Origin: Trichosphaerium sp. ATCC 40318
Lineage: Eukaryota > Protista > Tubulinea
Direction: 5' to 3'
DNA length: 64,000 nucleotides
Assembly (NCBI GenBank): GCA_038496445.1
Contig: JALMLS010000371.1
Coordinates: forward strand, 1 to 64,000
Each line of letters opens with the position of its first letter. Positions within the stretch are counted from its first letter, which is position 1. The position numbers and the translations under genes were made by a program. The notes below the pieces were generated by a model, which saw only the letters and a program-made list of their open reading frames with translations, searched no databases and was not told the origin of the DNA. Below, one piece after another: positions 1-64,000 of the stretch.

Positions 1-213
1 TTGACGATTGGAGGCGATCGGCTTTGGGGTGAGATGGTTGAGTTTTGAGTTTGTCAATTTTTTTATTTTGAATTTTTCTCCAAATTTTTCTATTAAGGAC
101 AGGACATGGTTTAAAACACGCAAATGGCACGTTTTGGGCACATTTTGGGCACGTTTATTTTCCACGCAAATGACACGTTTTAGGCACGCGTATTTTGTCC
201 GATTACTCCACTG
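1..213 (-). mobile_element. Family A TIR element end, cut by the window edge (mirror of the copy starting at 6819)
   Basis: Ends in tgtccgattactccactg, a variant of the family A TIR, preceded by CACGTTTTGGG repeats. Confidence 0.85.
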
Positions 214-468
214 ATGTGGCACATACTTTTCACATGTACATTACATGTACATATTAAACAAAATAAGTACAATTTTTTTACAAAAAGAATTGTATCAAAC
301 AGTTTCTACTATGTACATCATAATAAACCATACTATTTAGAAATTGTATTTTATTTAACCATTAATTTGGAATGGTATGTTTGTGTAATGAATTTCCAAA
401 TATGTTTTGTTCCATTGGATCAAGTACTACAGCTGTGTTTCTGATTATGTTATTTGCTGTAACAATAC

Positions 469-2959: not shown

Positions 2960-3249
2960 TTGTTATGCTGGAACTAATCACACGTGCCAAGATTGGGGTT
3001 GTCATTAAAGAGAACTGTTCAAAATTCATTTGCTTTGGAAGAAAGGAGGCGCAAAAGCTTGTTCCCCGCATGTGTCCCCCACATTTTTCCAAATTGGTAC
3101 ATTATTTAATAATGTTGGGTATTAATAGGCTTTAAGGCAATGTTATGTTGTAATATGATCCTAAGGACAGACCTCCCTTTAAAAAGATTATAATGGCCCT
3201 AAAGCAAATGAAAGAGTCTTGGAAAAACACAGAGCTAAAAACCTACTAG
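2960..3249 (+). pseudogene. TKL-type protein kinase C-lobe fragment in the palindrome spacer
   Basis: MLELITRAK...VPRMCPPHFSKL, a GT-AG intron, then AMLCC/(frameshift)YDPKDRPPFKKIIMALKQM, i.e. kinase subdomains IX-XI. Confidence 0.6.
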
Positions 3250-4019
3250 ATAATAAATGTTCAATTGTTTTAAAGGATGGTGCCTTCTTTTTACCTGACA
3301 AACCTTTTAGTTAAGACCAAAACACTATTTTAGTAGCCAAGGCTGTGTTTAACCATTTTTTTCCATATTTGTTCAAAGGTATGCTAAAGTGTCTGACATT
3401 GTCAAACACAACACACCCAAAGCTTCTGAAAATACACTCAAAGTAAGGAAAAAGCAATTCATATAAGCTCCATTATGCATTGCATATGAAAATGTTGCAA
3501 TTCATTTATACATGATCAGGAAATTTCCAACACTCACAAGCAATGTTTTGGCATCAACAAAACAGTCTTGTAGCCTTGAATATTACCAATTCCCAATGTG
3601 AATCATTACCAGACAAAGACAAGTTTATACAAGTGGCCACTACTGGAAATTGCTAATTGGATGGTTGATTTTAAAGAAACATGGGAGGATTGGGGTGCTG
3701 GTTTACTCCACCTCCTGATCCACCCCCTTTACCACCTACCAACTCCAAAAAACACTTATATCAACAACCAGTTAAAATTACTAACCCCACCCATATGTAG
3801 GTAGTAGGCAAAGACACAACTATTACTTAGATGATGAAAGCTCAGACGAGTGGGATGAAGATCTTTATTTTGAACTATGAAAATATAAAATGTAATAAAC
3901 AGCACACATGGTTATTGTCGTCCACAGCACAATAAACCCATCTTTTTTATTAAAAAAAAAAGTGGCATACAAACTCTGCATCAACACTACTCAACAACAT
4001 CACAGAAAAACTCAAGTAT

Positions 4020-4433
4020 CTCAAATCAATGGGATTTAAAGCCCCTCAAGACATCACTGTGAGGAGAAAGAAGAAATTGACACCAGATTAGTCAACTGGG
4101 TATTACAGCACTTTAAACTTTGGAAATTGTTGGTGCAATTTGTTTTTTTGCTCAATAATCCAAACTATACTCTCAGAACATTTGTTAAATGCCTTAATGT
4201 GTGATCAAGTTACCCTTTCTTCAATTACTTGCATTAAAAGCTAAAAACAAGTTTATCAATCAAATGGAGACCATCAAAGAAGCCTTACAAATGAAAAAGG
4301 CAAAATCTCTCTAACCAGCCATCATCAGTGATATATGGACTGATAAGCATGGTTGTGACTTTTTTGCTGTATTCATTGTGACTTTATCAACACAAAGTGG
4401 CAATGTGGTCACTTTGTTTGTGGACTGTCCATG
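4020..4433 (+). pseudogene. hAT-like DDE transposase remnant (partial mirror copy at about 2600-2878, minus strand)
   Basis: Manual translation gives ...IKEALQMKKAKSL*PAIISDIWTDKHGCDFFAVFIV, matching the hAT first catalytic-Asp motif (xxxDxWTD...F/YxAV). Stops and frameshifts are present. Confidence 0.65.
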
Positions 4434-5456
4434 ACAGCAAGAACATAAAGGTTAAAATATTAATTATGTTTTGTTTTTTTCCTTGTTTTTTTGCTTTATC
4501 ACTCTTCACAAGAACTAATGACACAAGTGATCTCTGATTACAGCATTACAATACATTACAATACATTACCACAAAACGACCATGTTTCTGGAGATATTTC
4601 TATCATCATGCCTTACTGACCTACAACTGCAACTTAACCACCACAACTTAGTGACTATTTCAGAAAATGCTTGAAACCCATAATCGCCTTTAAAAAGTGG
4701 TTTAATATAGCTATTAAGCCATAATATCCTTAAACTACTCCAAATACATATTTTCTGTCGTTTTTGCCTAAAAATGGTGCACTGAACCCCAAACCACCAT
4801 GAAACCATGCATCATACCTAATGCTACATTTTCTGAGTGGTTTGTACAGAAAGACCAAAGTTATGCAATAAAACAACAAAACACAGCAAAAAGCTACATT
4901 TTGCACTTTATTAAGTTTTCTCTCTAGTTTGTAAGTAAATGCCCTAATAATCAAATACAATGCATAACAAAACTGATATGTATGGCTTTTTCTTTGTTAA
5001 ATGGATATTTCAAAGTATAGTCAGACCATCCATTTAGATTTGGTGAAATACATTTGACAAGCATACTTTCAATAGTTTTGGCATAATTCCATTCAAAAAA
5101 GAGACAATGACATTTTAAAGGATACTGGCTTTGTGTGTCTGGCAGAAAGTAATTTTGATAGAAATCTCCAAAATATCATGTGGTTTGTTGATTTTCCATA
5201 GAGAACTAACAGCCTTAAGCATTTTGTGAACCTTTCAATGTTATCTAACATAATTTTTAGGGTAGGAGGCCATTTTATATCAGTTGGTTTGCGTTGGGTT
5301 GTGTTTAACAATGTCAGATACTTTAACATACCTTTGAGTAAATATGCACCACATACAGGTTAGATACATGTCAAAAGTGTGCCACATATGAACTAATACA
5401 AGACAAAAGTATGTGTCACATACAGGTTTTGTATATGCCAAAATCTTGATTACAGT

Positions 5457-6566
5457 CAGTGGTGGAATCGGACAGAACGCGAATCGCACGTTTTGGGCAC
5501 GTTTTGGGCACGTTTATTTTCCACGCAAAAGACACGTTTTGGACACGTTTTGGGCACGTTTTTTTTCCACGCAAAAGGCACGTTTCTCTTCCACATGCTG
5601 GCCACGCAAATCACACGTTTTGGACACGTTTTGGGCACGTTTATTATCTACGTTTTGGGCACGTTTTAGGCACGTTTATTTTCCACGTTTTGGGCACGTT
5701 TTGGGCACGCATATTTGCCACGCATATCACACGTTTTGGGCACGCATAAAACACCACTTTATAGAGGAAAAGAAAATAACAGTTTATTACGATACATAAC
5801 ACATAACGATTACAAAGAGGTTTGGTACAATTATTACAAACTTTACATAAAACTATCCCCACATAAACAATACCCAGTTTATATCAACCAACTTCATGTT
5901 TTTGCCATTTTACCTGCTTTTTTCGCCAATCCTGCCTTATCGTAAATACTTAAGCAAGAACTTACCTAATTAGGCAAAAATCTCAAATCCAATAATCGTC
6001 TTTAAAACGGGGTTTAATGGAGTTATTGAGCCATAATATCCTTAATCTACCCTAAATACTATTTTCTATCGTTTTTGCCTTAAAAAGGGGCACCGAACCC
6101 CAACCACCACGAAACCATGCATCGTACCTAATAGTGGGCCATACTTCGTTTTTTAAAGGATTCGTACTAGTAGACCTGAGTTATTCACGAAAAATAGGAA
6201 AATCAAGAAATTGTTGGTTTTTGGGTATTTTTAGATTTTTTCGCCTACTTTTAAAGCCATGCCAATACAAACCTAACTACTGCTTACTTGGGTGAAAATA
6301 CATGTTTTATTGTTGACGATTGGAGGCGATCGGCTTTGGGGTGAGATGGTTGAGTTTTGAGTTTGTCAATTTTTTTATTTTGAATTTTTCTCCAAATTTC
6401 TATTAAGGACAGGTCATGGTTAAAACACGCAAATGGCACGTTTTGGGCACGTTTATTGCAAATATACAACACGCAAATGGCACGTTTTGGGCACGTTTTG
6501 GGCACGTTTATTTTCCACGCAAATGGCACGTTTTAGGCACGCGTATTTTGTCCGATTCCACCACTG
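5457..6566 (-). mobile_element. Family A TIR element, complete (mirror copy of 469-1575), TSD GT
   Basis: Same TIRs, flanked by gt|...|gt. Confidence 0.92.
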
Positions 6567-6818
6567 GTATTGTTACAGCAAATAACATAATCAGAAACAC
6601 AGCTGTAGTACTTGATCCAATGGAACAAAACATATTTGGAAATTCATTACAAACATACCATTCCAAATTAATGGTTAAATAAAATACAATTTCTAAATAG
6701 TATGGTTTATTATGATGTACATAGTAGAAACTGTTGATACAATTCTTTTTGTAAAAAAATTGTACTTATTTTGTTTAATATGTACATGTATTGTACATGT
6801 GAAAAGTATGTGCCACAT

Positions 6819-7740
6819 CAGTGGTGGAATCGGACAAAATACGCGTGCCTAAAACGTGTCATTTGCGTGGAAAATAAACGTGCCCAAAATGTGCCCAAAA
6901 CGTGCCATTTGCGTGTTTTAACCATGTCCTGTCCTTAATAGAAATTTGGAGAAAAATTCAAAATAAAAAAAATGACAAACTCAAAACTCAACCATCTCAC
7001 CCCAAAGCCGATCGCCTCCAATCGTCAACAATAAAACATGTATTTTCACCCAAGTAAGCAGTAGTTAGGTTTGTATTGGCATGGCTTTAAAAGTAGGCGA
7101 AAAAATCTAAAAATACCCAAAAACCAACAATTTCTTGATTTTCCTATTTTTCGTGAATAACTCAGGTCTACTAGTACGAATCCTTTAAAAAACAAAGTAT
7201 GGCCCACTATTAGGTACGATGCATGGTTTCGTGGTGGTTTGGGGTTTGGTGCCCCTTTTTAAGGCAAAAACGATAGAAAATAGGTATTTAGGGTAGTTTA
7301 AGGATATTATGGCTCAATAACTCCATTAAACCCTTTTTAAAGACGATTATTGGATTTGAGATTTTTGCCTAATTAGGTAAGTTCTTGCTTAAGTATTTAC
7401 AATAAGGCAGGATTGGTGAAAAAGCAGGTAAAATGGCAAAACATGAAGTTGGTTGATATTACTGGGTATCGTTTATGTGGAGATAGTTTTATGTAAAGTT
7501 TGTAATAATTGTACCAAACCTCTTTGTAATCGTTATGTGTTATGTATCGTAATAAATCGTTATTTACTTTTCCTCTATAAAGTGGTGTTTTATGTGTGCC
7601 AAAACGTGTGATATGCGTGGCAAATATGCGTGCCCAAAACGTGCCCAAAACGTGAAAATAAACGTGCCTAAACATGCCCAAAACGTAGATAATAAATGTG
7701 CCCAAAACGTGTCCAAACGTGCGATTTGCGTGGCCAGCAT
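6819..7740 (+). mobile_element. Family A TIR element, truncated at its right end
   Basis: Starts CAGTGGTGGAATCGGACA inside a decayed family B repeat array, is collinear with 469-1437, then joins family C sequence abruptly at 7741. Confidence 0.85.
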
Positions 7741-7953
7741 TACCACTAAACAACCATATTTGACCTTTTTGAAAAGATATTTTAGACATCATGCCTTATT
7801 AGCCTAACCCCAACTTAATATCCACAACTTAACCACTATTTCAGAAAAATGCTTGAAACCCATAATCACCTTTAAAAAGTGGTTTAATAGAGCACATGCT
7901 TACACATACATTGTATGGAAAAAAAAGGAGTATGTTTTGTAGAGTACAGATCA

Positions 7954-10180
7954 CAGTAGTGAAATCGGAATTTTGACACGTACAATATATGTACGTGGCA
8001 TGTACTTTTCACACGTACAATATACGTACGTGGCACGTACTTTTCACACGTACAATATACGTACGTGCCACATACTTTTTCACACGTACAATATACGTAC
8101 GTGCCACGTACTTTTCACACGTACAATATACGTACGTGGCACGTATGTGTTACATACGTATTAAACAAAATAAGTAAAATTGTACAAAAAGAACTGTATC
8201 AACAGTTTCTACTATGTACATCATAATAAACCATACTATTGAGAAATTGTATTTTATTTAACCATTAATTTGGCATGGTATGTTTGTAATGATTTTCCAA
8301 ATATGTTTTGTTTCCATTGGATCAAGTACTACAGCTGTGTTTCTGATTATGTTATTTGCTGTAACAGTACTGTAATCAAGATTTTGGCATATACAAAACC
8401 TGTATATGACACATACTTTTGCCTTGTACTGTGACACATACTTTTGACATGTACCTAACCTGCATGTGGTACGTACTTACTCAAAGGTATGTTAAAGTAT
8501 CTGACATTGTCAAACACAACCCAACCCAAACCTACTTTTTTTTTTTTTTTTCAAAAAAGGTGGGTTTATTGTGCCAACCCAAACCTACTGATAAAATGGC
8601 CTTTACACTAAAAATTATGTTGATAACAGTTGAAAGGTTCACAAAATGCTTAACTCTGTTAGTTCTTTAAGGAGAATCAACAAACCACATGATATTTTGG
8701 AGATTTCAAAAAATTTACTTTCTGCCAGACACACAAATAGCCAGTGTATCCTTTACAATGTCATTGTCTCTTTTTTGAATGAAACTATGCCAAAGCTATT
8801 GGAAGTATGTTTGTCAAACATATCTCACCAAATCTAAATGGATGGTCTGACTATACTTTGAAATATTCATCTAACAAAGAAAAAGCTATACAAAACAGTT
8901 TTGTTATGCATTGTATTTGGAAGTGTAGGAATTCACTTTTTTTTGACAATGAAATACCTCCACAAAAAGTCATGTTTTGGCACCAACAAAACATTCTTAT
9001 TACACTCAATATAAATAACTCTCAATGTGTATCATTGTTAGATGAAGGAAAATTTACACAGATAGAAATTATGGGAAAGCTAAATGGCCAACTTTATTTT
9101 TTTGAACTATATGAAAAACAACTTGTAAAAAAATGCATGCATGGCCTGTATGTGTGGCATGTACTTTCAAACTGTATCTAATTTGTATGTGGCATGTACT
9201 TTTAACATGTACATAAAAAAGGTAAAAAAAAATTTGCCCAAAAATTCTGGCATTTGGTAGCCAAAAAATTCAAAAAAAAATCTCAAAAAATAACAGACAG
9301 CTTGTAGTCGCAAGGTACGAAACCATGTATTATTAATAAAAGAGGGTGTTTAGGATTATTAGGGCATTTACTTAAAAACTAGAGGAGAAAACTTAATAAA
9401 GTGCAAAATGTAGCTTTTTGCTGTGTTTTGTTGTTTTATTGCATAACTTAGGTCTCTCTGTACGAACCACTCAGAAAATGTAGCATTAGGTATAATTAGG
9501 TACAATGCATGGTTTCATGGTGGTTTGGGGTTCAGTGCACCATTTTTAGGCAAAAACGACAGAAAATATGTATTTGGAGTAGTTTAAGATATTATGGCTT
9601 AATAGCTCTATTAAACCACTTTTAAAGGCGATTATGGGTTTCAAGCATTTTTCTGAAATAGTGGTTAAGTTGTGGTGGTTAAGTTGCAGTTGTAGGTTGG
9701 TAAGGCATGATGATAGAAATATCTCCTGAAACATGGTCGTTTAGTGGTAATGTATTGTAATGTATTGTAATGTATTGTATGTAGTGTATTGTAATGTATT
9801 GTAATGTATATGTAGTTGTAATTACCAATAAACCAATCCATCGTTTTTAGTATTTTTTGTTCAAAACGAGGCAAAATTCCAACTTTTGACACGTACAATA
9901 TACGTACGTGGCACGTACTTTTCACACGTACAATATACGTACGTGGCACGTACTTTTCGCACGTACAATATACGTACGTGGCACGTACTTTTCGCACGTA
10001 CAATATACGTACGTGGCACGTACTTTTCACACGTACAATATACGTACGTGCCACGTACTTTTCACACGGATGAAATACGTACGTGGCACGTATTTTGACA
10101 CGTACAATATACGTACATGCCACGTACTTTTTCACACGTACAATATACGTACTTCACACGTACTTCCGATTTTACTACTG
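7954..10180 (+). mobile_element. Non-autonomous TIR DNA transposon, family B (2227 bp with internal cargo), 2-bp TSD CA
   Basis: TIRs CAGTAGTGAAATCGGAA...TTCCGATTTTACTACTG. A 35-bp subterminal unit ACACGTACAATATACGTACGTGGCACGTACTTTTC is arrayed at both ends. (TGTAA/TGTAT)n tract at about 9745-9820. Flanked by ca|...|ca. Confidence 0.9.
8590..9140 (+). pseudogene. Decayed non-LTR retrotransposon ORF2 C-terminal (zf-RVT-like) fragment carried inside family B; related pieces at about 1750-2080, 3450-3670 and 4950-5285
   Basis: Translation includes SQCIL... and FVMHCIWKCRNSLFFDN, resembling the IWxxRNxxxF motif at the end of L1/Tx1-clade ORF2. Confidence 0.55.
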
Positions 10181-10699
10181 CAACAATACAGAATCCATAT
10201 GAGTTACATACTGGACAAAAGTGTACAGATTTTGTATTGAAAGATACAGGTTAGGTACAGGTCAAAAGTACAGGTTTTGTACAGGTTTAGTATGAGTCAA
10301 AATCCTGATTCCAGTACCAAGAATACAACACTGGCACTTTTCAAACATGAAAATAGAGCATGTGGGGATTTTTTCACTTTCACATTTCTCTCCTCTAAAG
10401 AAAAAAAAAGCTGTGTGAAACAACAAAACATCTTTAATGTCACTTGAAAATGAAGAAAAACATCTAGTGACCTTATTGCTCCGTGAAAAGATTTACAAGG
10501 TACTAGCCATGCAATTTAGGCATTTTTGTAAAAAACAAGACATTATTTGGATGAAAATGCCTTGTTGAGTTTCAATCCTGAAGATGGGTTATTGTGCTGT
10601 GGATGACAATAACCACATGCTTTGTTATGTGTTTGTTTGCATAATGCAAAATAAAACTTCATGTACATAATGCATGTTATTTTATAATGCATTGTTTTT

Positions 10700-10990
10700 C
10701 ATACAAGATATAGCTTAAGCCTCAAAATTCCAATGGGCTATTAATTGCTAAAATCCATGATATACTAAGCTTGCAATAGTTACACAAAGTGTGTGAATCA
10801 TGTCTGTGTTTTTGACAGTCTTTTCAATTTCTCTAAAAGTGTATTATTTTGAAATAAACTAAGGGTTTTAACAATTTGAGCTACAAACAATTTTGCTGCA
10901 ACTTTCAAGTCCATTGCCCTAAATTATGTGCAAAGACACCAAAAAAGCCAGCTTGCTTTAAGGCTTCACTAGTATTTTTGAGTGTCATCT
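10700..10990 (-). pseudogene. Possible second hAT-like transposase fragment (CxxH region)
   Basis: Minus strand tgg tgt [c] ttt gca cat aat tta reads WCFAHNL if one inserted base is removed. Heavily decayed. Confidence 0.35.
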
Positions 10991-11009
10991 CTTAGCAAGT
11001 TTCTTTTTG

Positions 11010-11997
11010 CAGTACTGGAATTGGGATTTTGACCCGTACTAAACCCGTACGGAACCCGTACTTTTGACCCGTACTAAACCCGTACAGAACCTGTACTTTT
11101 GACCCGTACTTAACCCGTACAGGTTCCGTATTGTTGACCCGTACTCTACCCGTACGGGTTACGTATGGGATCCGTACGGGTAGAGTACAATTAAATAATA
11201 TGAAAAATTGGATACAAAATATACTCCTCTTTTTCATACATTGTATGTGTACACATATATCACATGTGTGCCAAAACCACAACCATCAGTATACACTTGC
11301 AATCAAAAAAAAAATTTGGCCATCAAATTTTGTTTGGATTTGGCAATCAAAAAATCCAAAAAAAATTACTGCAATTAAATGGCAGCTTGTAATCGTAAGG
11401 TACAAAACATGTATTATTAATAGATGAGGGTGTTTTAAGGTTATTAGGGCATTTACTTAAAAAGTAGAGGAGAAAACTTAATAAAGTGCAAAATGTAGCT
11501 TTTTGCTGAATTTTGTTGTTTTATTGAATAACTTTGGTCTGACTGTACGAACTGCTCAGAAAATGTAGCATTAGGTATATTTAGGTACGATGCATGGTTT
11601 CATGATGGTTTGGGGATCAACTCACCATTTTTAGGCAAAAACGACAGAAAATATGTATTTGGAGTAGTTTAAGGATATTATGGCCTAATAGCTCTATTAA
11701 ACCACTTTTTAAAGGCGATTATGGGTTTCAAGCATTTTTCTGAAGTAGTCGTTAAGTTGTGGATATTAAGTTGGGTTTTAGGACAATTAAGGCATGATGT
11801 CTAAAATATCTCCTCAAACAGGTCAAAAACATGGTCGTTTAGTGGTAGTGGGGTTGTAATGTAATGTAATGTATGTATTGTAATGTGTTGTAATGTAAAT
11901 GTACTTGTAATAGTTAAGAAAACAATAAACCAATCCATCGTTTTTACTATTTTGTGTACACAATTATAACTGCTGACACATATTTTGACCCGTACCT
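11010..11997 (+). mobile_element. Family C TIR element, right end missing
   Basis: Starts CAGTACTGGAATTGGG, has 35-bp subterminal units built on GACCCGTAC, and shares the internal core and TGTAA tract with family B. Confidence 0.8.
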
Positions 11998-12234
11998 GCA
12001 AATGAATTGCCTATTGTTTTTTGCTAATTTGCAATAGCAAAACCAGGCATTTGCCAACAAACAGCAAATACCTACATTTGCCAGCAAATGACAAATATCA
12101 AAATTTGCCAACAACTTGCCATAGATATTTTTACATCATCAAATGTCATTTGGTAAGTGCCAACTCCAGTGACATTTGGTAGGTGCCAACTCCAGTGACA
12201 TTTGGTAGGTAATGAAACTCCAATTTCAGCCCTG
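11998..12234 (-). mobile_element. End fragment of a fourth TIR family (D)
   Basis: Minus strand begins CAGGGCTGAAATTGG (same TIR consensus as A-C), followed by tandem CACCTACCAAATGTCACTGGAGTTGG units and TTTGCCA repeats. Confidence 0.65.
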
Positions 12235-42627: not shown

Positions 42628-43453
42628 TTACTTGTACAGCATATTAATACCAAACATTGCAGCGCACTCCGTTGTAATGCCAATATGTGAACAATTGATC
42701 GATAGTGTTTTAAGAGATTTAAAGTACATCAAGGAGTCATCTGTTAAATCAAGAATGGAACAATAAGATAGTTCAAGGTGTTCAAGGTTTACCAAATTCT
42801 TTAAACAAGCTTCTGTTATATTCTTGCTATGATTCAGTCTGAGGTGCTTGACATTAGACAAGGATTTTATGTGTTCATTGGATGTATTGCCAAGATGTAC
42901 AAAGTATACATCCTTGAGTGCTTTTATACCTTCAGCTGTGATTTTCGAACAGTAAGCAATAGCAATTGAGTGTACAGTACTCAGTGTATTTAATGAAGCA
43001 TCTGTTATTAGAGTACGTGTCACATTAATGGTATGAACACCTTTTAGTGCTTTAATACCTTCATCAGTTACTTGACTACAACCACTGAGGTCAATGGCGT
43101 GAACGCCCTTAAGTGCTTTAATGCCTTCATCTGTTATTTGACTACAACCACTGAGGTCAATAGAATGAACACCTGCCAGGCAAGCCAAATCATTATCTGA
43201 GGATTCCTTATTGCATTTCATCACAGTGTTTTTAAGCAATGGGCTACCTTTTAGAGCAACACAATCTAATGGTTCTTTCATACGCAAATAGACAAATCCA
43301 ATATTAGTACGTATTGTTAAACATGCGAGAAACAGCAGAAGCTGTTATACGATCGTTTTTTTGTAAATAAAATAGAATGTGTGTTAATGTCTCTGGTGGA
43401 AGATGCTGTGGCGTTTTTTCATTTTTTGGCGATGTTTCGCAATGATTTGCCAT
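42628..43453 (-). pseudogene. Intronless F-box/LRR gene with an apparent frameshift near 43315
   Basis: ATG at 43453 gives an F-box (QHLPPETLTHILFYL) that stops at FNNTY*. A frame change gives IRTNIGFVYLRM...SPLLKN and GVHxIDLSGC LRRs collinear with the neighbouring paralog. Could be a sequencing error. Confidence 0.65.
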
Positions 43454-43482
43454 AATAACAGAGCTGGAAACTTTTTATGTGA

Positions 43483-44814
43483 TTGACTTTCAGCGACTGG
43501 CTTGATCGCCTATTTTTTCATCTTTTGTCAATATTAGCGGCCTGGCCAGACCCCTTGTTACAATCGCGACAATTAGGCTTAATGGCGAGCGTATACAAAG
43601 AAACCAAAATGTTTAAGCATTCCACAAGCGACTTGAACTATATTGAGCTTTTGGATGTACCAACAGAGATACTGGCTCATTTACTTGCGTTTGTAGACCG
43701 TTCTTCTCGATTTCTTGTTTCTCAAAGCTGTAGACGTTTATCAGACATAATTCACCATCACGTTGGATACGATGTTATCAAAGTTAACTCTACTGAAAGT
43801 TGTGCCCTTCTTTCAAAAAGTCCTCTCCTCAAAAACAGCAAAATAATATTTTGGAAGAAAGGAACTGACACAGATCTTGCTTTTCTTTCTGGTGTTCATG
43901 AAATAGGAATAATGTTAAACAAGAACATAACAGATGCAGGATTAAAGAGTATTTGTGGTGTACATAGTTTAGTATTGGCAAGATGTCCACAAATTACAGA
44001 TGCAGGAGTAGTACCACTAGTGAAACATCTCAAACACATTGCTTTGAAGAGAAACGCCAAAATGACAGCATCAGGTATCAAAGCACTAGCAGGTATACGA
44101 AGTGTCTATATTGCTCACTCAAATGTTACAGATGACATATTGTCCATGTTTTCTGGAGTACACAATATATCATTACAGGGATGTGCCCTGATAACATGCA
44201 AAGGTGTTTCAGCATTAGCTGGAGTACACACAATTGATTTAAGTGGAACTTTTGTCAACAATGAAAGTGTTTCATCATTGGCTGGTGTACATACCATACT
44301 ATTGAGCAGAACATCTGTCACAGATGTATCAGTACTGGCTGGTGTACATACAATATATTTAAGTGGAACACCAATCACAGATAAAGGTATTTCAGCGTTG
44401 GGCGGTGTACACACCATATATTTGAACAGAACATCTATCACAGACGTATCAGCATTGGCTGGTGCACACATAATAAGTTTACGTAGTTGTCAACTCATCA
44501 CAGACAAGAGCTTATCAAAACTAGTTGGTGTTCATACAATTAATTTATCACAATGTATGAGTATTACTGCGTCGTGTATGAAAAGTCTTGCTGGTGCACA
44601 TACCATTGATTTGTCATCCACAAATGCAACAGATGATTGGCTTGTTCCTCTCAGTCGTGTAAAAAAAATACGATTGTATGAATGTCAGCAGATTACAGAG
44701 AAGGGTATTGAAGCGCTGTTAAGCGTCCGTGAAATAACTCTATCAAAAAGGTATACTTCAAAAGAAACTATAAATACTCTAAAAGAAAAAGGCATAAATG
44801 TAAAAGCACTCTAA
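43483..44814 (+). CDS. Intronless F-box/LRR protein (first ATG about 43581)
   Basis: LLDVPTEILAHLLAFV F-box followed by about 12 LAGVHTIxLSxTxITD repeats. Confidence 0.9.
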   Translation: MTFSDWLDRLFFHLLSILAAWPDPLLQSRQLGLMASVYKETKMFKHSTSDLNYIELLDVPTEILAHLLAFVDRSSRFLVSQSCRRLSDIIHHHVGYDVIKVNSTESCALLSKSPLLKNSKIIFWKKGTDTDLAFLSGVHEIGIMLNKNITDAGLKSICGVHSLVLARCPQITDAGVVPLVKHLKHIALKRNAKMTASGIKALAGIRSVYIAHSNVTDDILSMFSGVHNISLQGCALITCKGVSALAGVHTIDLSGTFVNNESVSSLAGVHTILLSRTSVTDVSVLAGVHTIYLSGTPITDKGISALGGVHTIYLNRTSITDVSALAGAHIISLRSCQLITDKSLSKLVGVHTINLSQCMSITASCMKSLAGAHTIDLSSTNATDDWLVPLSRVKKIRLYECQQITEKGIEALLSVREITLSKRYTSKETINTLKEKGINVKAL

Positions 44815-52685: not shown

Positions 52686-53372
52686 ATGCTGAGCCTACCA
52701 GTAGAGATGCGTTTCATGATATTTAGCGCTGATGAGTACGTTTTTAACATGTGGCCAATTTTGAGCAAGGAAACAGCATACACAAGTCGGTATAACGATA
52801 AGCTTGAGAAGCACGGTAAATTCAGACGTAAAGAGATTGTTTTTAACCAAATACGTAAAATTGAATGTTGGTACAGAGATGATAAGCTTGATGGCTTGTA
52901 CTCTGAGTGGTATGCATGGGGTCAACTTTGCTCAGAAACTATGTACAAAAACGGAGTAAAACATGGCAGTAGCCACATATTTCATTCAAATGGCAATCTT
53001 CTTTCAGAGAGCTCATTCAAGGAAGGCAGACAACATGGTAAGCAGATGATATTTAATGAGAGAGGAGATTTAAGAGAGGAACGTACTTTTGTTGAAGGTC
53101 GTATTGATGGCATGAGAAGAGAGTTGTTTGTTTGTAATCCAGGGACAATTGGGTCCAATACTCAGTTATGTGAAAGGAAGTGCTTTTACAAGATGGGCAA
53201 AAAAGAAGGGATGTGTGTCACACGTTTTGAGAAAGGAAACACGTTTGAAGAGTGTTTTTATTTGAATGGAAAGTTGCATGGTACATACAGGAAGTGGAAT
53301 ACTAATGGAGTATTGGAATATCACCTCGTATACAACGAAGGAGTTCTGGTTGAAATAATAAAAAAAAAATAG
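52686..53372 (+). CDS. Intronless MORN-variant (YwqK-like) repeat protein
   Basis: Repeats such as YKNGVKHGSSHIFHSNG, FKEGRQHGKQMIFNERG and YLNGKLHGTYRKWNTNG, plus a degenerate F-box-like N-terminus (LSLPVEMRFMIF). Confidence 0.88.
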   Translation: MLSLPVEMRFMIFSADEYVFNMWPILSKETAYTSRYNDKLEKHGKFRRKEIVFNQIRKIECWYRDDKLDGLYSEWYAWGQLCSETMYKNGVKHGSSHIFHSNGNLLSESSFKEGRQHGKQMIFNERGDLREERTFVEGRIDGMRRELFVCNPGTIGSNTQLCERKCFYKMGKKEGMCVTRFEKGNTFEECFYLNGKLHGTYRKWNTNGVLEYHLVYNEGVLVEIIKKK

Positions 53373-53695: not shown

Positions 53696-56600
53696 TTAAA
53701 CTTTATTAGCATTTGGGCCAATAGTAGCCCATAGCTCTTTGCATGCATTTTTGGACGCTGAAGCAAGTAAAGATGTGTCTTCAACCTCCAAGCATATCGT
53801 ATGTCCTTTTTGCTTTGTAAATACAGCAGCTCGGCTCCACAAATGCTATATAACTTATCATTAACAAACACAAAATACAAACAACTAAAAACGTGCCGTT
53901 GCTGTCCAGCCTTTATCAAGGAGGAACACTGTCAATGAATCCTTCATTGAAGCTTCCAAAGAAGTAACTTGAGTCATATCGCTACAAGCCCTGTAAATAT
54001 CCATACAGGCATATTATTAAAAAAACACGTGCTCTGGGAGTGCTGATGCTAGCTCTTTCTTGGACGTTTCACCTAGAAGTGCAGGAAAAAAGATTTGTTT
54101 GTTGTTCTACAACACGTGTAAGAATGAAAGAGTAGTTATTTCTGTTGTTGTATACCTCAATAGTTGGTGCTACACCTTGAACACATGCGCGTGGATTTAC
54201 GATATATAAGACGCTGTGAAGTGCCAGTAAATTTGTAAAGTAAGACAAAATGCCAATGTCAAAATTCTCTAAAATGTATGCAAGCTACAGTCAAAGTCAG
54301 CATACGTAAAAACAGGTACAGATAAATAGTAAAAAAAATTAGTACACGTGTTGTCAAGAACCCTTTGTTGAATGCTGTTGCTTTTGAAGTAATTAAAACT
54401 CCAACTACGTCCATAATAACGTTAGGGTCCAAAACCACATAATTCGCAACATTGGGTGCATCATAGTATCTCTTGGTGAACCATATTAGAAAAAAAACTT
54501 ACGAAAATCCAACGAAAAGTTAGCTGTTCGTACAATGTATCCCATGTCACTTAAATATTTTGTTATAGAAAATAACTCATTATCATCATCTATACCACCA
54601 TATCCTTTTGCATATCTTCTCCATTCCTTGAAGGTGTTAAATGGATATGGAATGTTAGGGCTATATTTTTTTTTAACGTACTTGAAATTTTAGTATTTGA
54701 AAGTCACGTTTGAGACATGTTGCTAAGTATTGCATTCTCCAATGATTCATTCCTATTTTTTTCACCAATCCCATCGTTTTTCGTAAAGGCAGTTCACTTG
54801 ATACCTTGGATAATTGATTCGCAAGCTCTAAATTTATCAAGGGTTAACTCTCCATGTTCCAACATTTTCTACAAAAAAAAATACCTGGAATGCCTTTGCC
54901 AGTCATATTAGACACGAAACAAACACCCATGAAAGGAAATGAATCAACGTTATATCTTAAAACAAGTGCGCTATGTAGTTTACTAACATAGACCTTATTA
55001 GCAACATCTAGATGAGTTCCTGAAGGGCGTAAGACAAAACGTATAAACATTGAGATTAAAAAGTTTTTTGGTACCAACAATGAATATTGGAATTGAGCCA
55101 GAAGTGTCTAGTACGGACTGTATCCAAAAGTCCAGCCGATTTAGATCGGCATTACCTACATTGAAGCAAATGACAGCGGCACAATGTTCATGTGACAACA
55201 TCATCTTATAAGCAAGGTGGTAAACGGTTTGACCTGTCGTCAGTCACAACTTGTTTAAGAAAAAAAAAAATCTTAATCATTTCCGCACCTGCAAAGTCCC
55301 ACGTTATATGTTCAACTCTGTCCTCTTTTGGACCTTTTTGAGGTAGTTCTAGTAATCCTGTATCGACCCCATATGTAGTTAGAATTAAAAGTGGTTGATA
55401 CGAATGAGTGATCTGTTTACTGCTCAAAGAGTTTAAAGTTGTCGTCTTGCCAACATTGTTGTCGCCCAAAAATACCAAACGTGACCGATTTCCAACTTCA
55501 GCCGTAGCGCATACTGAGCGACAATAGTTCAATAGCGCTTTATCAGATTGACTAGCAAGTGCACTTCGTATACCACGAGGAATTGGAAAAGGTAACAAGT
55601 CCAAAGGGCATTCTGTGACAGCGAGGTTTGAAAGAGTCGGATGGACGAATAGAGACATTGGCAAGTCTTTCAAGTTCCTGTTGTAGCTTAAATTAATTGT
55701 TTCGAGTGCTGGAAGACATGAGAACATATCTGCTACAGTCGTAATATCGTTGTAGGAGGCATTCAGTGATTTTAATTGCGATAGATGTCTCAGAGATATC
55801 GGTAGTTCAATAAGCCCACACTCCCTCAATGTCAAGTGCGTTAAAGTGATCAGAGCTGATATTGCAGGGTAAGGTACATAAGTGAAAGTTGACTCTTCTA
55901 TCACAAGCTCTTTAACACCACCGCCCTATAGTCCAAGTCAGTTCAGACTATAACCAACGGGACGAAAAAAAAAGATTGAACAAAATCAAACCCTAAGTGC
56001 CTACCTTGAGTGCTATGAGTACATTGTCTATTGCGTTTAATTCAATATCATGACGCTTTAATAAATGAGCCTTAGTCACTAACCCTCTCGCACACTAGTG
56101 ATCGATTAATTTGGAAACAAAGTAACACGTGACTTTTTTCTCTTTTACCTTTATAACCTGCCTATTTCCGCCTAGAACTTGCTTCAAGGTCCGTACTGCG
56201 AGTTGAGCTTTTGCTGTTTTTTTACTCATATACATAGACTCCTTCCTTGATCTACTAGATGATAGAGATCCTGATACCATAATAACTGTTCCTTTTTTTG
56301 GATGAACTTCCTCTATAAGTACTTGTTGTAGCGTGAAATTCTTTCCAGATATATACTCCGCAAAGGCAAGTAATGAAGGAGGTTTAATATCATTCCTTGA
56401 TAAGTCTATAAGTTTTAATCTTTTGTTAAACGCCAAGCACTCTGAACCAAGCGTCATTAGTAGTTTTGGACCTAATCCATACGAAGGCAAGTGTAGCTCC
56501 TTTATAAAGTTATCTTCGCCTAATTTCTTGAAAAACAGAATAACATCATCAACGTTTACGCCACCACTACTTTTTTTAAGTAAAACAGTCGCTGGTGGTT

Positions 56601-56738
56601 TTAATTCGATTGATAGGCTTCGTTCCGCTTTAAACTTCTTTAACCATCTAGGCCTATAATAATAGCGTAAAATACTGTATTTTATCACGTGTTACGAACG
56701 GACAAAACTAACCATTTCGGTTTTTCTACTTTTTCCAT
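53696..56738 (-). CDS. Roco-family protein (LRR-Roc GTPase-COR), no kinase domain evident
   Basis: LRRs, then LVFLGDNNVGKTT, TYGVD, ITWDFAGQ, LDFWIQSV and IFIVG/THLD, then COR-like LSDMGYIV and YVVLDP. Confidence 0.85.
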
Positions 56739-58299
56739 CGTTTCTTCGTCTATACACTCCAGACGCTAATGACGCTCGATATAATACCCTGAGAACGCGC
56801 GGATATCCAAAAAAGATACCGCTAACCACCTGAACTGTAAAGTGAACAAGAAAGACGTTCGGTTACAGTTTTGGTGTATTCGTTTGTTGTAACCAGTTTA
56901 GTCATCGCTTTAAGTCACAGTTTATTTGCACGTGTTCTAAAACACGCTCACAACCGAATTCCAGCATTTTAGATCTCTACATACCAACACATTCGCTTAT
57001 AACCTAATTTGTAACAAAGCCACTTATCGACGAGGCCGAAGGCGCTTTATGCTTTAAAACCTTTGTGTATCACTCCACTCCCGAGACTTGTAACGCATAA
57101 AACTTTATGCTCTTATCATCACTTTACTCTAATGTACTGTTCGTCTTTACGATTAAGACAAAGTTGTATTCTACAAGTCATGTTTTCTATTTGTACCAAG
57201 CAAAGGCTAAGTGGTTTTTTTATTTGTGTATACATTTCGTATTACATACTCTTCGCTTTGATATGTTTACATTACGATAGCTTGATTGTGTGTACACTGG
57301 ACAGATTAAATCCAATTATATGTTGAATTTGGCATGGTAAGTTTAATGGCATTACACTTGCAAGACTGTTCGTACCTCCATTAATCGCAAGTTACTCAAA
57401 AATATATATGAAACCTAACAATTCTACAAGATTCTTTACAACTCATACTTACGCAACCACGCAAAGGTTGTTACTTCACTTTACACTCTCAATTTTATGT
57501 GCTGGTTCTGTATGCGAAACAAAGCCAAGATAACTTTAGACCATTGTTTTATTAGGCATTAAGCTTTGTAAGAAACCATGCAAAACAATAAAAAAGGAAT
57601 ACTGATGCATTCTTTTTTGCTAAATGAAAGAAAAAAAAAAGGAAAACTTGTGAAATGTTAATTAATAGAAGAAAAAGGATTTTATTAATTACAACAACCC
57701 CCTTGTGTGAACCAGCGAAACCCTATGTATAGAATAGAAAGTAAGTTATTAAAGGACACTACATATGTACCGTTCTGCAAGCCATCATCCCTTATCACCC
57801 AAAGCCAATCTGTGAATCCTACCTAATGATTACATCTACTGCACCCATCCTGTGCATCCACATCCCATTGTACCTAACCTATTGTGAGTTACACCTACTG
57901 CGCCTGTAATCTGTTCCTTTGTCATCTCAACACGTGTTAAACTCGGTCAACCAGTGAAAACTGACCCAGCTGGCATGTGCTAAGAGGATGAAGAACAGAC
58001 TACAGTACAGATACCACCACAGTCGTATAATGAGCAGTAGGTGTAACAATCCCAATACCCCCATCCTGTGAATCCTGCCTAACGCACCATCCTATGAATC
58101 TATACCCACCTTGTACCTACCTATTGTAAGCCAAGTTGCGAAGGTAGAACAGTTAGTCAATACACTTTTAAACATCCAATAAACACGTACTTATGCTAAG
58201 CCACCACTTGCACCCAAATCTGTATCCCTTTGCCAACATCTCTTAGCCAACCTGCACAGAAGTTACCATCAATTACACCACAACTTACCCTCATGTTTA

Positions 58300-59040
58300 T
58301 AGTTAATGCCAATAATAGAACCACCTGACATATACATCTGCTCATAAGATGAGCACCTAAAACTGCATATCCCTGGATCAATTGGCTATACACACCTTCA
58401 TCATTAGTGTGTATAGCGCAGTTAGTTAGCAAATGAACTTGTACCTCCTCATTGAACACCTCATCTTGTGCTAGTACCTAAGTTAGCACCTATTGCACCA
58501 CAACCTACCCATATGTAGTTAGCGCCAATAATAGAACCACCTGACATCTACATCTGCTCATAAGATGAGCACCTAAAACTGCATAACCCTGGATCAATTG
58601 GCTATACACACCTTCATCAATAGTGTGTATAGCGCAGTTAAGTTAGCAAATGAACTAACTCCGACATCTTGTGTGCTAGTACCTAAAACTGCATATCCCT
58701 GGATCAATTGGCTATACACACCTTCATCATTAGTGTGTATAGCGCAGTTAGTTAGCAAATGAACTTGCACCTCCTCATTGAACTCCGACATCTTGTGTGC
58801 TAGTACCTAAAACTGCATTCCCTGGATCAATTGGCTATACACACCTTCATCAGTAGTGTGTATAGCGCAGCTAAGTTAGCAAATGAACTAACTCCGACAT
58901 CTTGTGTGCTAGTACCTAAAACTGCATTCCCTGGATCAATTGGCTATACACACCTTCATCATTAGTGTGTATAGCGCAGTTAGTTAGCAAATGAACTTGT
59001 ACCTCCTCATAGAACTCCTACATCTTGTATTTGACCTAAA
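58300..59040. repeat. Tandem array of five 109-123-bp hairpin units with long/short alternation
   Basis: GCTATACACAC-n11-GTGTGTATAGC starts at 58385, 58601, 58711, 58834 and 58943. Confidence 0.95.
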
Positions 59041-59644
59041 CGTCAGTCAGCAGGCTGTACCTTTGTCCAAGTGCGATCCTCCCATCCTTTAAGTGCGCTA
59101 CTATGGTATAAAATAAAGGTTAGTCATACATCCACAAGGGCTTCACTACATACCTTTTGTAATGCCCAACCATTTCCGTCTTGTTTTGCTAGATGAGTTA
59201 GAAGGTGTACCACTACCTAAACGTACTTGGGTTGACTGCCTTTTCCTTTAATCTGCCATTGCCATTCAGACCATCCACATCTATTACCCACCCAAGTAAT
59301 AGAACTTGTCTTTCCTTTAGGTGTTACCTAGATGTGTTACACAGCGTATGAATTACCTTTCCTCTCAAGTACTTGGCTGGTCCCTTTCCTTGTCGAGGTT
59401 GAAGTTGTAACACTTGCATGCTCATGTTGATGTACTTGGCTTGAGTGCCTTTCCGTCAATTGAGTCAATGCATCACATCTGTTCCCACCCAAGTACTAGA
59501 ACTTGTCTTTCCTTTAGGTGTTCCCTAGATGTGTCATACAGTTGCTTGAATTACTTAGTTGGAATCATTGATTCCCTTCATCCACCCAGGCATGTTACAT
59601 TTGTACATGCTTAGGACTGTAATGATGTGTTACAATATCTCGAT

Positions 59645-60328
59645 TAGTATTTCTACACCTCCTTGATGGGAAGTGTTATAATACTAGAAGAGATAATAAC
59701 TTTCATACACAGGTAGTTTAGTTGTTGCCCACTGAGGACTTCAATACATACCTTGTGTAAATGCTTACCTGGCTTAGCACCCGATTAGCATTTCTACACC
59801 TCCTTGAAGAAGTGTTATAATGCTAGAAGAAGTGATGCAAGTTAGCGCCACGCTGTGTATTAGCTCTAGAACTCGATTAACATTTCTACACCTGCTGTAG
59901 GTGTTATAATGTTAGAAGAGAACAAAGGTCAGTTATACGTTCATATGGTTTGTTGTAGCCCATTAAGGACTTTAACACATACCTTGTGTAATGTTAACCA
60001 TGTGACTTGCACATTGGTGTAACATTGCTCAGAACTCGATTAGCATTTCTACACTTTTCCTTTTTTGGATGTGTGTTATAATGCTAGAAGAGAACAAGAG
60101 CATTGGTGCTTTCAAATGTTGCCTACTAAGGGCATCACTCTTGACACATTGGAGTCTTTCCTCCCATAAGTACTTGGACAAGTGCCGTTCCTTGTGGGTA
60201 AAAGTTGTAGCACCCCTACATCATAAAAGATGTTGAGGCAACTGATGACATGTACTTGTTAGGGTACTATGTCTGTAACCCAGAACTCGATTAACATTTC
60301 TACACCTGCGGTGGGTGTTATAATGATA
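59645..60328. repeat. Five dispersed copies of hairpin module alpha
   Basis: TAGCATT-TCT-ACAC-(variable)-GTGT-TAT-AATGCTA at 59645-59686, 59786-59825, 59878-59914, 60041-60086 and 60292-60328. Confidence 0.9.
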
Positions 60329-61321
60329 GAAGAGAACAGTTACAACACAACCAAATATTTGGTTGTGGTAAAGTGTGTAGAGTACAGTGTGCTCATCCCC
60401 ACCAAGGTACTTAAGACATGTCTTGTTCCCAAGGAGGCTAAATGCATTGAATGTAGTCTCTGCAGGTTGATGGTCCTGCAACGTCAAATATGAACCATTT
60501 ATTCACCATACTGCAGTATGCAGCTGTGGTGTACAGAACAGAAGTATTTGACAATGCATGATGTAGTTACATCATCACATCTTTCAAGCTGCAGATCGAT
60601 TAACACTGCCTATGCTATGTTTTTTACGCATTTTTCATAGGGGTTACGTGATAGAAGACCTGACAAGGGGTAAGAGAAGCGACTTCTAGGGCACATCACA
60701 CAAAAATTCTTTGTACCTGCCTTTTTTGGCAGAATTTTAGTTTTTTTGGATTGGTGCCTCAAAGTACTTTCTTCTTTTATGCTATATTAGGCTACACGGT
60801 TGTAAGACTGGAGGTCTATAGCGAAAATATTCAGTTTTCAAGGCACCTAGAACACTGTTGTAACAATCGTAGCTATCTACATACCCGTTGTGTACTGAGG
60901 TTGTCGGTTTGAAAAAAAAACCTCCAACACGATTATTGGTTTGTTGTTTCTGTGCTTTGGGCTGCTTTTTCGTTGTTGAAAGTGCACGAATAACTACTCG
61001 TTGGACCTAATACGCTCTTGAAAGACCCGTCACAGTATTTTATTGCGTCCACGCGTATTGAATATAAATAGAAATAGTATCAAAAATCCAACCGTTTTTT
61101 TTTACCAAAACTGCCTTTATTTATCTGTATCGCGTTTATAACCGCTAAGGCGTTGTTTTCCGAGACCTATTCGGCGTTTTCAGCGTTCCCCTCCACGACG
61201 AATTTCCATGACCTTCGAAAGAAAAAAAAATCCACAGATCCAATCTCGTTTCTTTTTTTGGAAATGGTTTTTTTATTGTTTAAACACAAACAAGCTGGCT
61301 AAAGTTGAGAGAATCTTGGGT

Positions 61322-64000
61322 TTAGTGAGGCTCAGAATGAGCAGCATTTAGTTGCTTTGCAAACGATTTTCCTCTGTATCCTCTTATAATGGTCCTACCA
61401 TTCGCATTTCCACCGGTGTATCTGTACTGTATACCTGTTCCGTCCTTGTTTAACAGAACATAACGAACTCCATCTCCTGTAGGTATCTTCTCCCCAAAGC
61501 GCTTATTCTGGTATCCATTCTCAAGAATAGTAGTAGATTTCGCTGCATAAGGTTGGTAAGAACCGTTATCTTCAAGCCAAAACCATGAACCACGTGCTAC
61601 GACAAAAAATAAGCAAAAGACTTCAAAAACCATTTCCTCGTTTTTTAAATAGAAAGTGTTTTTTACCTATTTGTCTTGTGAACCCTGTACTCTTCCTCTG
61701 TTGTGTCATTGTCTTTAAATTTGCAGTATAACGTCCTCCAACAACCTATGTGAGATTATTAAGAAGAAATTATACTTACAAAACGTACAGTGATAACTAC
61801 TTTGCCTTCTTTGTATCCATCTTCCAACTAAGAAAAAATCAGTTACGACGAAAAAAAAGTTAACGAAGTTGTACCGCTTTGTTGTCAGCTGGTCCATACT
61901 CATTCCATTGGGAGTCATCCTTGTAGAACCAATGAGGTTCAGGAACGTTAATACCTCCTTGAGAAGCGGAACCTTCTTCTTCATCATCGTATTCCTCAGC
62001 GTTAAGGAACTCAATTTTAAAAGCTATTCTGTCCTTATGGATAGCATAACGATTGACGTGCTGCATAATGAGCGCTTCGTAGCTACCAGTAGCAGCAAAG
62101 TACTGTAACGCAAGAGTAGAATCCAAAGGATCGTCAACGTCTGGGTTAAGAAGCAATCCATAAACACAATTCAACACGGTAGTCATAGCAGTGTCGGCTG
62201 TCCAATTTCTATGAAAAAAAGTTAGATAAAAAAACGAGCGAATTTGCTTACCTTGTGAAAATAGAGTGACATATTTTACCTAAAAGTAGGAGGTTAGAGT
62301 AATCGCTCGTGTATATATTATCGCACCGTATTGGTTGACGTTACAATGACGTATTGGTGTAATGAACCTCATTTCAGGAGCAGACATTGGGTAGTCTTCA
62401 GGGAACTGACAGTACAACAAGTACGTTCCATTCTTATATGGTGATGCCTCTGGCGCTTCCATAATAACTCTCCAGAAACCAATATCCTCTTGACAAGGAT
62501 ATATATCGAAAGCAGGATGCTTCGCTAAAACAACACGTCAAAACATGATCCAAAAACTGCAAAGCAAAAAAAAAAAAAAAGTGTTTTCTTGTTCTTACCT
62601 TTCATGAGTTTTGTCAACTCCTTCATTAATCGACGAATACGATTAGTCTCTACTGGCGCATCTTTCTCGGAAGCATTCTTTAAAGTAGTCTCAAGAGTTT
62701 GAACTGGTTTTTTCAAGTTCGTAGGTTGCTTCCTTGCAGGAACACGTGTGTCACTGCACTCATCGAGAGGGAATCTCCAGTTATTTCCGAATTTTAGTAA
62801 ATCTCCTCTATTAGATACAAAATTCTTGATTGCCTCCTAAATAACAAGTGTAAGGCTTTCAGAAAAGGCAGTAAAATGAAAAAATTACCTGATCTGGTCT
62901 CTCATATGAAGTCAATAGAGTTTCAAGCTCATTCAACCTAAGAGCTTGTTTTAAGTTCTCAGGAGCAAAAGCGTAACCGTTACTCGCTTTAGCTATTGCA
63001 CGCAACTATAAAATTCTGTAAGCTCTTTTATTTTGAAGTGGAAGGCAAACTGAAATGTGGAGAAAAAAAAGTCAAAACAATTTGCGTACCTTGACGTTTT
63101 TAGCGCCTTCACCAATCATAATCGCATCCAAAGTAATACGGTTGACCTAAGCAATAGCATGTCAATCAAGAAATTTACAGCTAAAAGTGTACCTGTAAGT
63201 ATTGCGCAACCTTCCATGGAATAGATGAAGACTTTGTGTCTTCACCATCAGTAAGACACATAACACGTAACCTAGCGTTCTTGTGCTTTTTCTTATATGC
63301 AACAAGCTCTTCTCCAGCTTTTTGAATAGCATCCCAAAGCTTGGTTTCACCCTCAGCATCAGCGGAATCAACTTGATCTCTGAATATTTCGTATCTATTC
63401 GGCGAAGGAAAAAAGTCAACAAACATCTTTTGCGATGTAATTTGGTTGGGAAAAAAAAAAGTGTAATTGCACGTACAGAGGTGTTAATTTACACGAGTAA
63501 TCAACATCATTTCCAAAAAGAATTAATCCAATATGATTAGGGTAATCATAAGCTTGAGACCTGTTGATGAAGGCATGGAACAGTTGTTTTACAGTCTCCA
63601 TACGTGTCAAGCGCGCCTCGTTCCTAAAAAATTAAATCAGCCCGCAAACCAGACAACCTGTTGTCTAGTACTCATCGTGTGGTGCTTTCATCTCAATTAC
63701 ACCACCAAGAGGGTATCTACTGATTTTTTGGTTGTCATGGAAGAGAGTACCAGTGTACCATCCATCTCCAATTTTTCTAAGTAAGGGTAAGTTCAAGTGC
63801 ATGTAGGCACTGTGTACCTCATATTGGTCCATAGTGAAAACGATTTTGGTTGGATGAGACCGAGTTTGTGCCAAATTAGTAACTTCAATTCGTATGTCTT
63901 AAAAACAACTAGAGTTAGCTTAACAACCACACTAAGTCACGTACGGTTAAGCTTGTTGATACTGTGACATCAAACATTGTACCATGCATGCTCTTAATCT
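61322..64000 (-). CDS. vWA - ubiquitin-conjugating (E2/UBC) - WWE - WWE protein, 5' part outside the window
   Basis: vWA motifs (IGLILFG, ETKLWDAI, CLTDGED), UBC motifs (SPYKNGTY, FPEDYPMSAPEMRFITPIRHCNVNQYG/KICHSIF, PDVDDPLD) and two WWE-like repeats (WFYKDDSQWNEY, WFWLEDNGSYQPY). Confidence 0.88.

Follow-up and report, generated by a model that had tools for sequence, protein, structure and literature searches.

Five paralogous hairpins in a hairpin-rich non-coding locus of Trichosphaerium, possible miRNA-like precursors

The window analysed here is a 64,000-nt stretch of DNA from Trichosphaerium sp. ATCC 40318 (contig JALMLS010000371.1, positions 1 to 64,000). Within it, two minus-strand genes bound a locus of about 3 kb, 57680-60700, that contains no ORF longer than 88 aa and gives no coding signal. 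AAUAAA motifs lie near 57685 and near 61277. Because the second of these follows the stop codon of the upstream gene by about 45 nt, the hairpins probably belong to a transcription unit of their own. Its main features and neighbours are as follows.

55206-56688, minus strand: downstream gene, LRR-Roc
about 57680-60700 (about 3 kb), minus strand: hairpin-rich non-coding locus, with about 25 local hairpins and several repeated families in a local-fold scan
57903-58005, minus strand: long, near-perfect hairpin of 103 nt, -46.7 kcal/mol, z -7.0
58300-59040, minus strand: tandem array, five units that each measure about 109-124 nt
59120-59162, minus strand: third gamma module
59705-59759, minus strand: gamma-3 (conserved segment at 59718-59760), immediately upstream of alpha-1 and part of a duplicated super-unit of a beta or gamma module plus an alpha hairpin
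59921-60003, minus strand: gamma-2 (conserved segment at 59949-59991), immediately upstream of alpha-3 and likewise part of the duplicated super-unit
60482-60552, minus strand: separate hairpin of 71 nt on the 5' side of the locus, -24.5 kcal/mol, z -4.3, equally stable on both strands
61322-62462, minus strand: upstream gene with UQ_con (E2) and WWE domains, stop codon at 61322

Elsewhere in the window, 42628-44814 and 52686-53372 hold a MORN-repeat gene and two LRR genes that lie side by side, one of them with an F-box. For the F-box-LRR protein, Nucleocytoviricota supply nearly all of the closest Atlas clusters (LRR clusters), and the best public homologue has only 47% identity; the gene content of these two segments may be related to giant viruses. 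Positions 1-12000 have a low GC content (33-36%) and carry repeated ORFs on both strands with common motifs such as FWARFGHV. This segment has the appearance of tandem or dispersed repeats and not of genes.

Part of the hairpin locus is covered by RNA. In one public RNA run, contigs of 60-230 nt span 57903-59137 at a depth of 16-42, and a depth of about 3 extends over 57700-57800 and up to about 59214. No contig of this run lies over 59215-60700, the stretch that includes the alpha hairpins described below. The depth over 57903-59137 and its sharp boundary to zero argue that the 3' half of the locus is truly transcribed and does not reflect DNA carry-over. Some ends of the RNA contigs continue into sequence that is absent from the window, and these loose ends do not map anywhere inside it. 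They show that related modules occur elsewhere in the genome.

The transcribed half holds two conspicuous structures. The long hairpin at 57903-58005 is covered by contigs of the RNA run and is 9 kcal/mol more stable on the minus strand than on the plus strand. A variant contig retains the lower ~25 bp of its stem despite seven substitutions and three indels. This hairpin is in its own right a strong candidate for a hairpin RNA or miRNA precursor. The tandem array is covered at a depth of 20-40, without spliced joints, and each of its units contains a perfect 12-bp hairpin with a UGAUGA loop, a branch-point-like GCUAAC motif, and a junction of UUUUAG with GUAC.

The uncovered half contains the hairpins that are our main subject. 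The original prediction was of five similar hairpins, here called alpha, and the window indeed contains exactly five, whose predicted coordinates are off by no more than about 6 nt. A search for ATTATAACAC-N(6-30)-GTGTAGAAAT gives five matches, on the minus strand only, where dinucleotide shuffles of the window lead us to expect none. Each of the complete 20-nt arms is likewise found five times in the window at up to one mismatch. We built a covariance model from the five copies and searched the 64-kb window with filters off. The five copies score 82-88 bits and the next minus-strand match scores 12.9 bits, so that this search finds no further alpha copy in the 64 kb. The five cores lie in a cluster of about 700 nt. 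In the list below, z-scores compare the extended hairpins with shuffles, and bit scores are those of the covariance model.

alpha-1, 59625-59711 (core 59639-59692), minus strand: U-A double substitution in the 7-bp stem; 8 further basal pairs; -26.1 kcal/mol; z -4.5; 85.6 bits
alpha-2, 59766-59850 (core 59780-59831), minus strand: consensus 7-bp stem; outer stem changed to wobble pairs (UUC/GGG); two U.G pairs in the apical stem; z -2.6; 85.7 bits
alpha-3, 59858-59939 (core 59872-59920), minus strand: A-U double substitution in the 7-bp stem; weak basal stem; z -1.7; 87.9 bits
alpha-4, 60021-60111 (core 60035-60092), minus strand: both arms equal to the consensus; apical part of 18 nt, the longest of the five; 8 additional basal pairs with loops between them; basal stem p 0.03; z -3.6; 82.5 bits
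alpha-5, 60272-60353 (core 60286-60334), minus strand: U.U mismatch in the 7-bp stem; basal helix of 8 bp (including UGUAACU/GGUUACA) plus 3 more pairs; z -0.6; 87.5 bits

Single-sequence folding with RNAfold and consensus folding with RNAalifold both reproduced the predicted architecture, which is common to all five copies. From the base upwards, it consists of a basal stem, three CUC/GAG pairs, a 3x3 internal loop (UUC/AUC), a 7-bp stem, a second 3x3 internal loop (AUA/AGA), and an ACAC/GUGU stem that is extended by 0-4 pairs and closed by a variable loop. The core is 49-58 nt long and has arms of 20-24 positions and 12-18 predicted pairs; the 3x3 loops leave 5-6 positions unpaired. The 7-bp stem varies just as had been described: two copies read UAGCAUU/AAUGCUA, one reads UAGUAUU/AAUACUA and another UAACAUU/AAUGUUA, and the mismatch reported for the fifth copy is a U.U. 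ACAC and GUGU are separated by 9-18 nt, which extend the stem, with one U.G pair in copy 1 and two in copy 2, again as predicted. The proposal that the basal stems pair in spite of unrelated sequences fared less evenly. Pairing is better than in shuffled flanks in only three of the five copies (p 0.03-0.09), and in copies 2 and 3 it does not exceed that of shuffled flanks (p 0.59 and 0.70). The basal stems of copies 1, 4 and 5 contribute another 8-11 pairs, for about 32-35 stem positions in all. In copies 3-5, a small loop below CUC/GAG is conserved and the basal stem beneath it varies yet remains paired.

The repetition and the hairpin potential of the alpha copies are beyond doubt. Is the hairpin also what selection has preserved? 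Each 20-nt arm differs from the consensus at no more than one position (95-100% identity), and loops and flanks cannot be aligned. All eight differences found in the 200 nt of arm sequence fall at paired positions. Of the seven substitution events that we infer, six preserve pairing: there are two compensatory double changes (one in copy 1 and one in the ancestor of copies 3 and 5) and two wobble-preserving changes in copy 2, and a single disruptive change in copy 5. This covariation is real but thin, and the formal statistics are weak with five sequences. Ten of the 16 pairs are invariant, and when columns were shuffled, two double-changed pairs appeared in 124 of 500 shuffles and the observed covariation score was reached in 29 of 500. 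The internal loops carry no change in 60 nt, against 8 changes in 140 paired nt (hypergeometric p ~0.054), and the invariance of the loops is therefore not separable from the conservation that the arms show as a whole. Purifying selection on the hairpin core is indicated most strongly by a contrast: arms at 95-100% identity sit in duplicated units whose surrounding homology has decayed to noise.

Which strand carries the functional hairpin is not decided by energy, as the summed minimum free energies of the extended hairpins are -109.7 kcal/mol on the minus strand and -110.7 kcal/mol on the plus strand. The substitution pattern mildly favours the minus strand. A C-to-U change in the 3' arm that is common to copies 3 and 5 implies a G.U intermediate on the minus strand, where the plus strand would have an A.C mismatch. 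Moreover, both changes in copy 2 give U.G pairs on the minus strand, and the apical extensions of copies 1 and 2 contain U.G pairs on that strand. The remainder of the locus folds better on the minus strand, and both flanking genes are encoded there.

The alpha hairpins do not stand alone. Alignment of the units identified a duplicated super-unit of about 130-240 nt that comprises two hairpins, a beta or gamma module followed by an alpha hairpin. The two beta modules that precede alpha-4 and alpha-5 can be aligned with gamma, and beta and gamma thus look homologous. The unit alignment shows the combined units as products of old tandem duplications that have decayed everywhere but in the hairpin cores. 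The gamma module conserves UUACA(C/A)AAGGUAUGU, which resembles a consensus 5' splice site, followed by an apical mini-hairpin of 4 bp. The beta motif, GGAA...(C)AAGUAC(U)U...GGG, occurs at seven sites on the minus strand between 59195 and 60450. It resembles a segment of eukaryotic 5S rRNA, AGUAC-UUGG-GGGAG in loop E / helix IV, but Rfam gave no 5S match for it. Folds of the beta hairpins are no more stable than those of shuffled sequences (z +1.7 to -1.0).

A coding explanation of the repeats is contradicted by the arms themselves. In all five copies, the frame of the peptide HYNT/RCRNANRVL is closed by UAG or UAA immediately upstream. On the minus strand, stops occur in two of the three frames of the 5' arm and in one frame of the 3' arm. 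A minus-strand open frame does cross four of the five copies (those with loops of 9, 9, 12 and 18), and in copies 3 and 4 it ends a few codons past the hairpin. On the plus strand, an ATG within the arm opens ORFs of 26-55 aa in four of the five copies, and the encoded peptides are unrelated outside the hairpin. We therefore uphold the part of the original prediction that called alpha a repeated, structure-selected, non-coding RNA element, since six of seven events keep pairing and stops interrupt the arm frames. Its further suggestion of a protein- or ligand-binding motif with fixed loops is putative and is not specifically favoured by these data; a ligand-binding aptamer has no support.

We also considered whether alpha belongs to a recognized class. 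Box C/D snoRNAs are defined by a C box (RUGAUGA) and a D box (CUGA) that are joined by a terminal stem. None was found at the alpha copies, and the lone C/D pairing in the locus belongs to the tandem array and has a terminal stem of 2 bp. In box H/ACA snoRNAs, the pseudouridylation pocket has its top 14-16 nt before the ACA or H box, and the hinge carries an H box, ANANNA. The ACA spacing of copies 3-5 agrees with this, but their loop measures only 3 x 4-5 nt, and an adequate pocket and a consistent H box are both absent here. An intron reading takes GGUAUGU in gamma as the 5' site, followed by a branch-like motif and by a YAG downstream of alpha; the introns would be about 131-133 nt long, and the reading fits only copies 1 and 3; copy 2 would be exonic, copies 4 and 5 have no 5' site, and the RNA run contains no joints. 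A MITE-like element is likewise disfavoured by the lack of copies outside the 700-nt cluster in the 64 kb and by imperfect arms with fixed mismatches. No flanking duplication shared around the alpha copies appeared in the unit alignment.

Searches for relatives returned only matches at the level of chance. Rfam gave no match anywhere in the window at gathering thresholds, and at E values up to 10 over 56-64 kb it gave chance-level matches only; no Rfam miRNA family was matched, and SNORA69 appeared at E 2.1 only, on the opposite strand. A scan of public DNA for the exact two-arm pattern returned 61 metagenome loci and one viral locus. All 62 were judged to be chance, as their flanks agree at no more than 10 of 23 compared positions, and these metagenome and viral scans thus provided no alpha orthologue. 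The arm sequences are absent from searchable paper text and from the supplements of PMC11014262. Within the window, neither arm has a target at up to three mismatches. A stretch of 28 nt near the putative 3' end of the locus (57635-57662) is 82% complementary to the loop and 3' arm of alpha-4 (60039-60066); it is A/U-rich and the complementarity is probably due to chance. Alpha is a new RNA family, of a kind (clustered paralogous hairpins under structural selection) that is already known.

Our leading interpretation, which we hold tentatively and at a probability of roughly 40%, is that the alpha copies are paralogous miRNA-like precursor hairpins of one family within a non-coding locus of about 3 kb that is probably polycistronic and transcribed from the minus strand. 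An RNase III enzyme of the Dicer or Drosha type would excise a duplex of about 21-22 nt from the two conserved arms, a duplex in which both symmetric 3x3 loops would form fixed mismatches. The likelier guide would be the 3' arm, starting GUGUAGAA. With this start, nothing changes at positions 1-10 and 13-17, and the variation falls at positions 11-12, which in guides generally is the region least used in seed-type targeting. The variable positions of the 5' arm would sit in the seed.

Several features argue for miRNA-like precursors. Both arms of about 20 nt are kept, and the flanks are free, as is the apical loop with regard to its sequence and its length; this conservation suits a family of small-RNA precursors no less well than a binding motif. 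Among known RNA classes, a pattern of preserved arms and a free loop is most typical of Dicer/Drosha substrates. Higher conservation of the arms than of loop and flanks, which is a criterion for miRNA precursors, is seen here among paralogues only. The core is of pre-miRNA size and has the same architecture in all five copies, and the changes within it (two compensatory doubles, two wobble-preserving, one disruptive) all affect paired positions. The locus contains other strong hairpins (57903-58005 and 60482-60552) among its approximately 25, its 3' half is transcribed, and it lacks long ORFs. There is a precedent in amoebozoan miRNAs, for which conserved arms, a free loop and compensatory changes between the arms served as supporting evidence (PMC11014262); such compensatory arm changes are reported for Acanthamoeba mir-1228 (PMC11014262).

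Other observations weigh against miRNA-like precursors. The one RNA run has no contigs over the alpha hairpins. The duplex of a miRNA precursor is about 20-24 nt long, contains about 16 pairs or more and leaves few positions unpaired; with 5-6 unpaired positions, alpha is a borderline case under strict miRNA criteria. Copies 2 and 3 have weak basal stems, and the fold of copy 5 is no more stable than those of its shuffles. Furthermore, the neighbours (beta, gamma and the 12-bp stem of the tandem array) are not miRNA-like, no Rfam miRNA family matches, and energy leaves the strand unfixed.

What else could the alpha hairpins be? They could form a structural binding module in a lncRNA or a UTR-like transcript that serves as a scaffold or sponge, with the internal loops as a putative docking surface for a protein, possibly a dimer. 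Both loops are invariant in all five copies and the stem between them varies by compensation; separated by about one helical turn (3+7+3 positions), they would face the same side of the helix. A free apical loop, which leaves the conserved information in mid-stem, would suit such a module, as would the persistence of the 3' half of the locus as longer RNA (contigs of 60-230 nt). The beta and gamma neighbours, which are unlike Dicer substrates, also suit a modular lncRNA better than a pure miRNA cluster. However, loop invariance does not significantly exceed arm conservation (0 of 60 against 8 of 140 nt), known protein-binding hairpin arrays usually conserve the very apical loop that is free in alpha, no protein partner or motif match is known, and the alpha part is uncovered in the RNA run. 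We regard a binding module as somewhat unlikely, yet as the main rival to miRNA-like precursors. A fuller version, in which alpha is a module of a new modular structured ncRNA, built of covarying hairpin families, whose invariant loops recruit protein and which acts undiced as a scaffold or sponge, we regard as unlikely.

Processing into small RNAs of another kind is improbable in our estimate. Here, the duplicated unit would be an H/ACA-like pair of hairpins, or the alpha hairpins would be RNase III processing signals in a polycistron. The unit is a two-hairpin module of about 130-240 nt, and an ACA follows the GAG of the core at 13-14 nt in copies 3-5, at 10 nt in copy 1 and at 21 nt in copy 2. 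This ACA comes immediately after the basal stem in copies 1, 4 and 5, and copies 3-5 conserve the loop below CUC/GAG above a varying but paired basal stem. Against an H/ACA-like RNA, the pocket measures only 3 x 3-5 nt, and copies 1 and 2 have none. A consistent H box is missing, and the most strongly conserved part is the upper stem, not a guide pocket; C/D boxes and a significant Rfam snoRNA match are absent as well. The least probable reading that we weighed places function, if any, at the level of DNA. The repeats would be what is left of a short palindromic mobile element or a satellite, or paired half-sites for a transcription factor, and the hairpin would be incidental. It is consistent with this reading that 59215-60700 has no RNA contigs and 57903-59137 is expressed, such that the alpha region could be upstream regulatory DNA, that both strands fold equally well, and that the RNA contigs point to related modules elsewhere in the genome. 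Yet six of seven events keep pairing and two of these are exact compensatory doubles, which is unexpected for independent half-sites. The invariant, non-complementary loops argue against homogenization of the arms by palindrome repair, the spacers of 9-18 nt are unlike those of dimeric binding sites, and no dispersed copies exist in the 64 kb. Arms at 95-100% identity beside unalignable flanks additionally imply selection on the core.

Comparison with known systems helps to place a family of miRNA-like precursors among these possibilities. Polycistronic miRNA clusters with paralogous hairpins include mir-17~92 and mir-430 in animals and MIR395 and MIR166 in plants. Alpha resembles such clusters in that several pre-miRNA-sized hairpins share one intergenic non-coding locus and preserve their arms with loop and flanks free, and it shares compensatory changes between the arms with these clusters and with amoebozoan miRNAs. 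It differs from them in its two 3x3 loops (5-6 unpaired positions), in the weak basal stems of two of five copies, and in the non-miRNA-like modules alongside. The 3' UTR of the transferrin receptor contains five IREs, and the U1A-binding element has two internal loops. Like arrays of this type, alpha has five similar hairpins in about 700 nt, invariant unpaired nucleotides with variable pairs, and two internal loops about one helical turn apart. IREs conserve their apical loop, whereas that of alpha is free in sequence and length. Box H/ACA snoRNAs, which consist of hairpin, hinge, hairpin and ACA, are often clustered in protists and plants. The alpha unit shares the two hairpins and, in four copies, an ACA soon after the basal stem; it departs from these snoRNAs in its small pocket, inconsistent H box and upper-stem conservation, and Rfam matches remain at chance. 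Among protists, miRNAs are described from Amoebozoa (PMC11014262) and Ichthyosporea (PMC6206976), and alpha matches neither Rfam miRNA families nor the sequences in these two reports.

Why would this locus matter? Accepted miRNAs are known in few protists, 15 species in all (PMC11014262). The five alpha copies constitute a ready mutational series, with two compensatory variants, one wobble variant and one mismatch. If no dicing of the alpha hairpins takes place, the locus would provide a rare example of a protist lncRNA composed of repeated modules under structural selection. If they are diced, Trichosphaerium, a unicellular eukaryote, would possess a miRNA-like family of several copies within a large polycistron of hairpins, and clustered paralogous miRNA families of this kind offer a route to studying the evolution of seeds and their targets.
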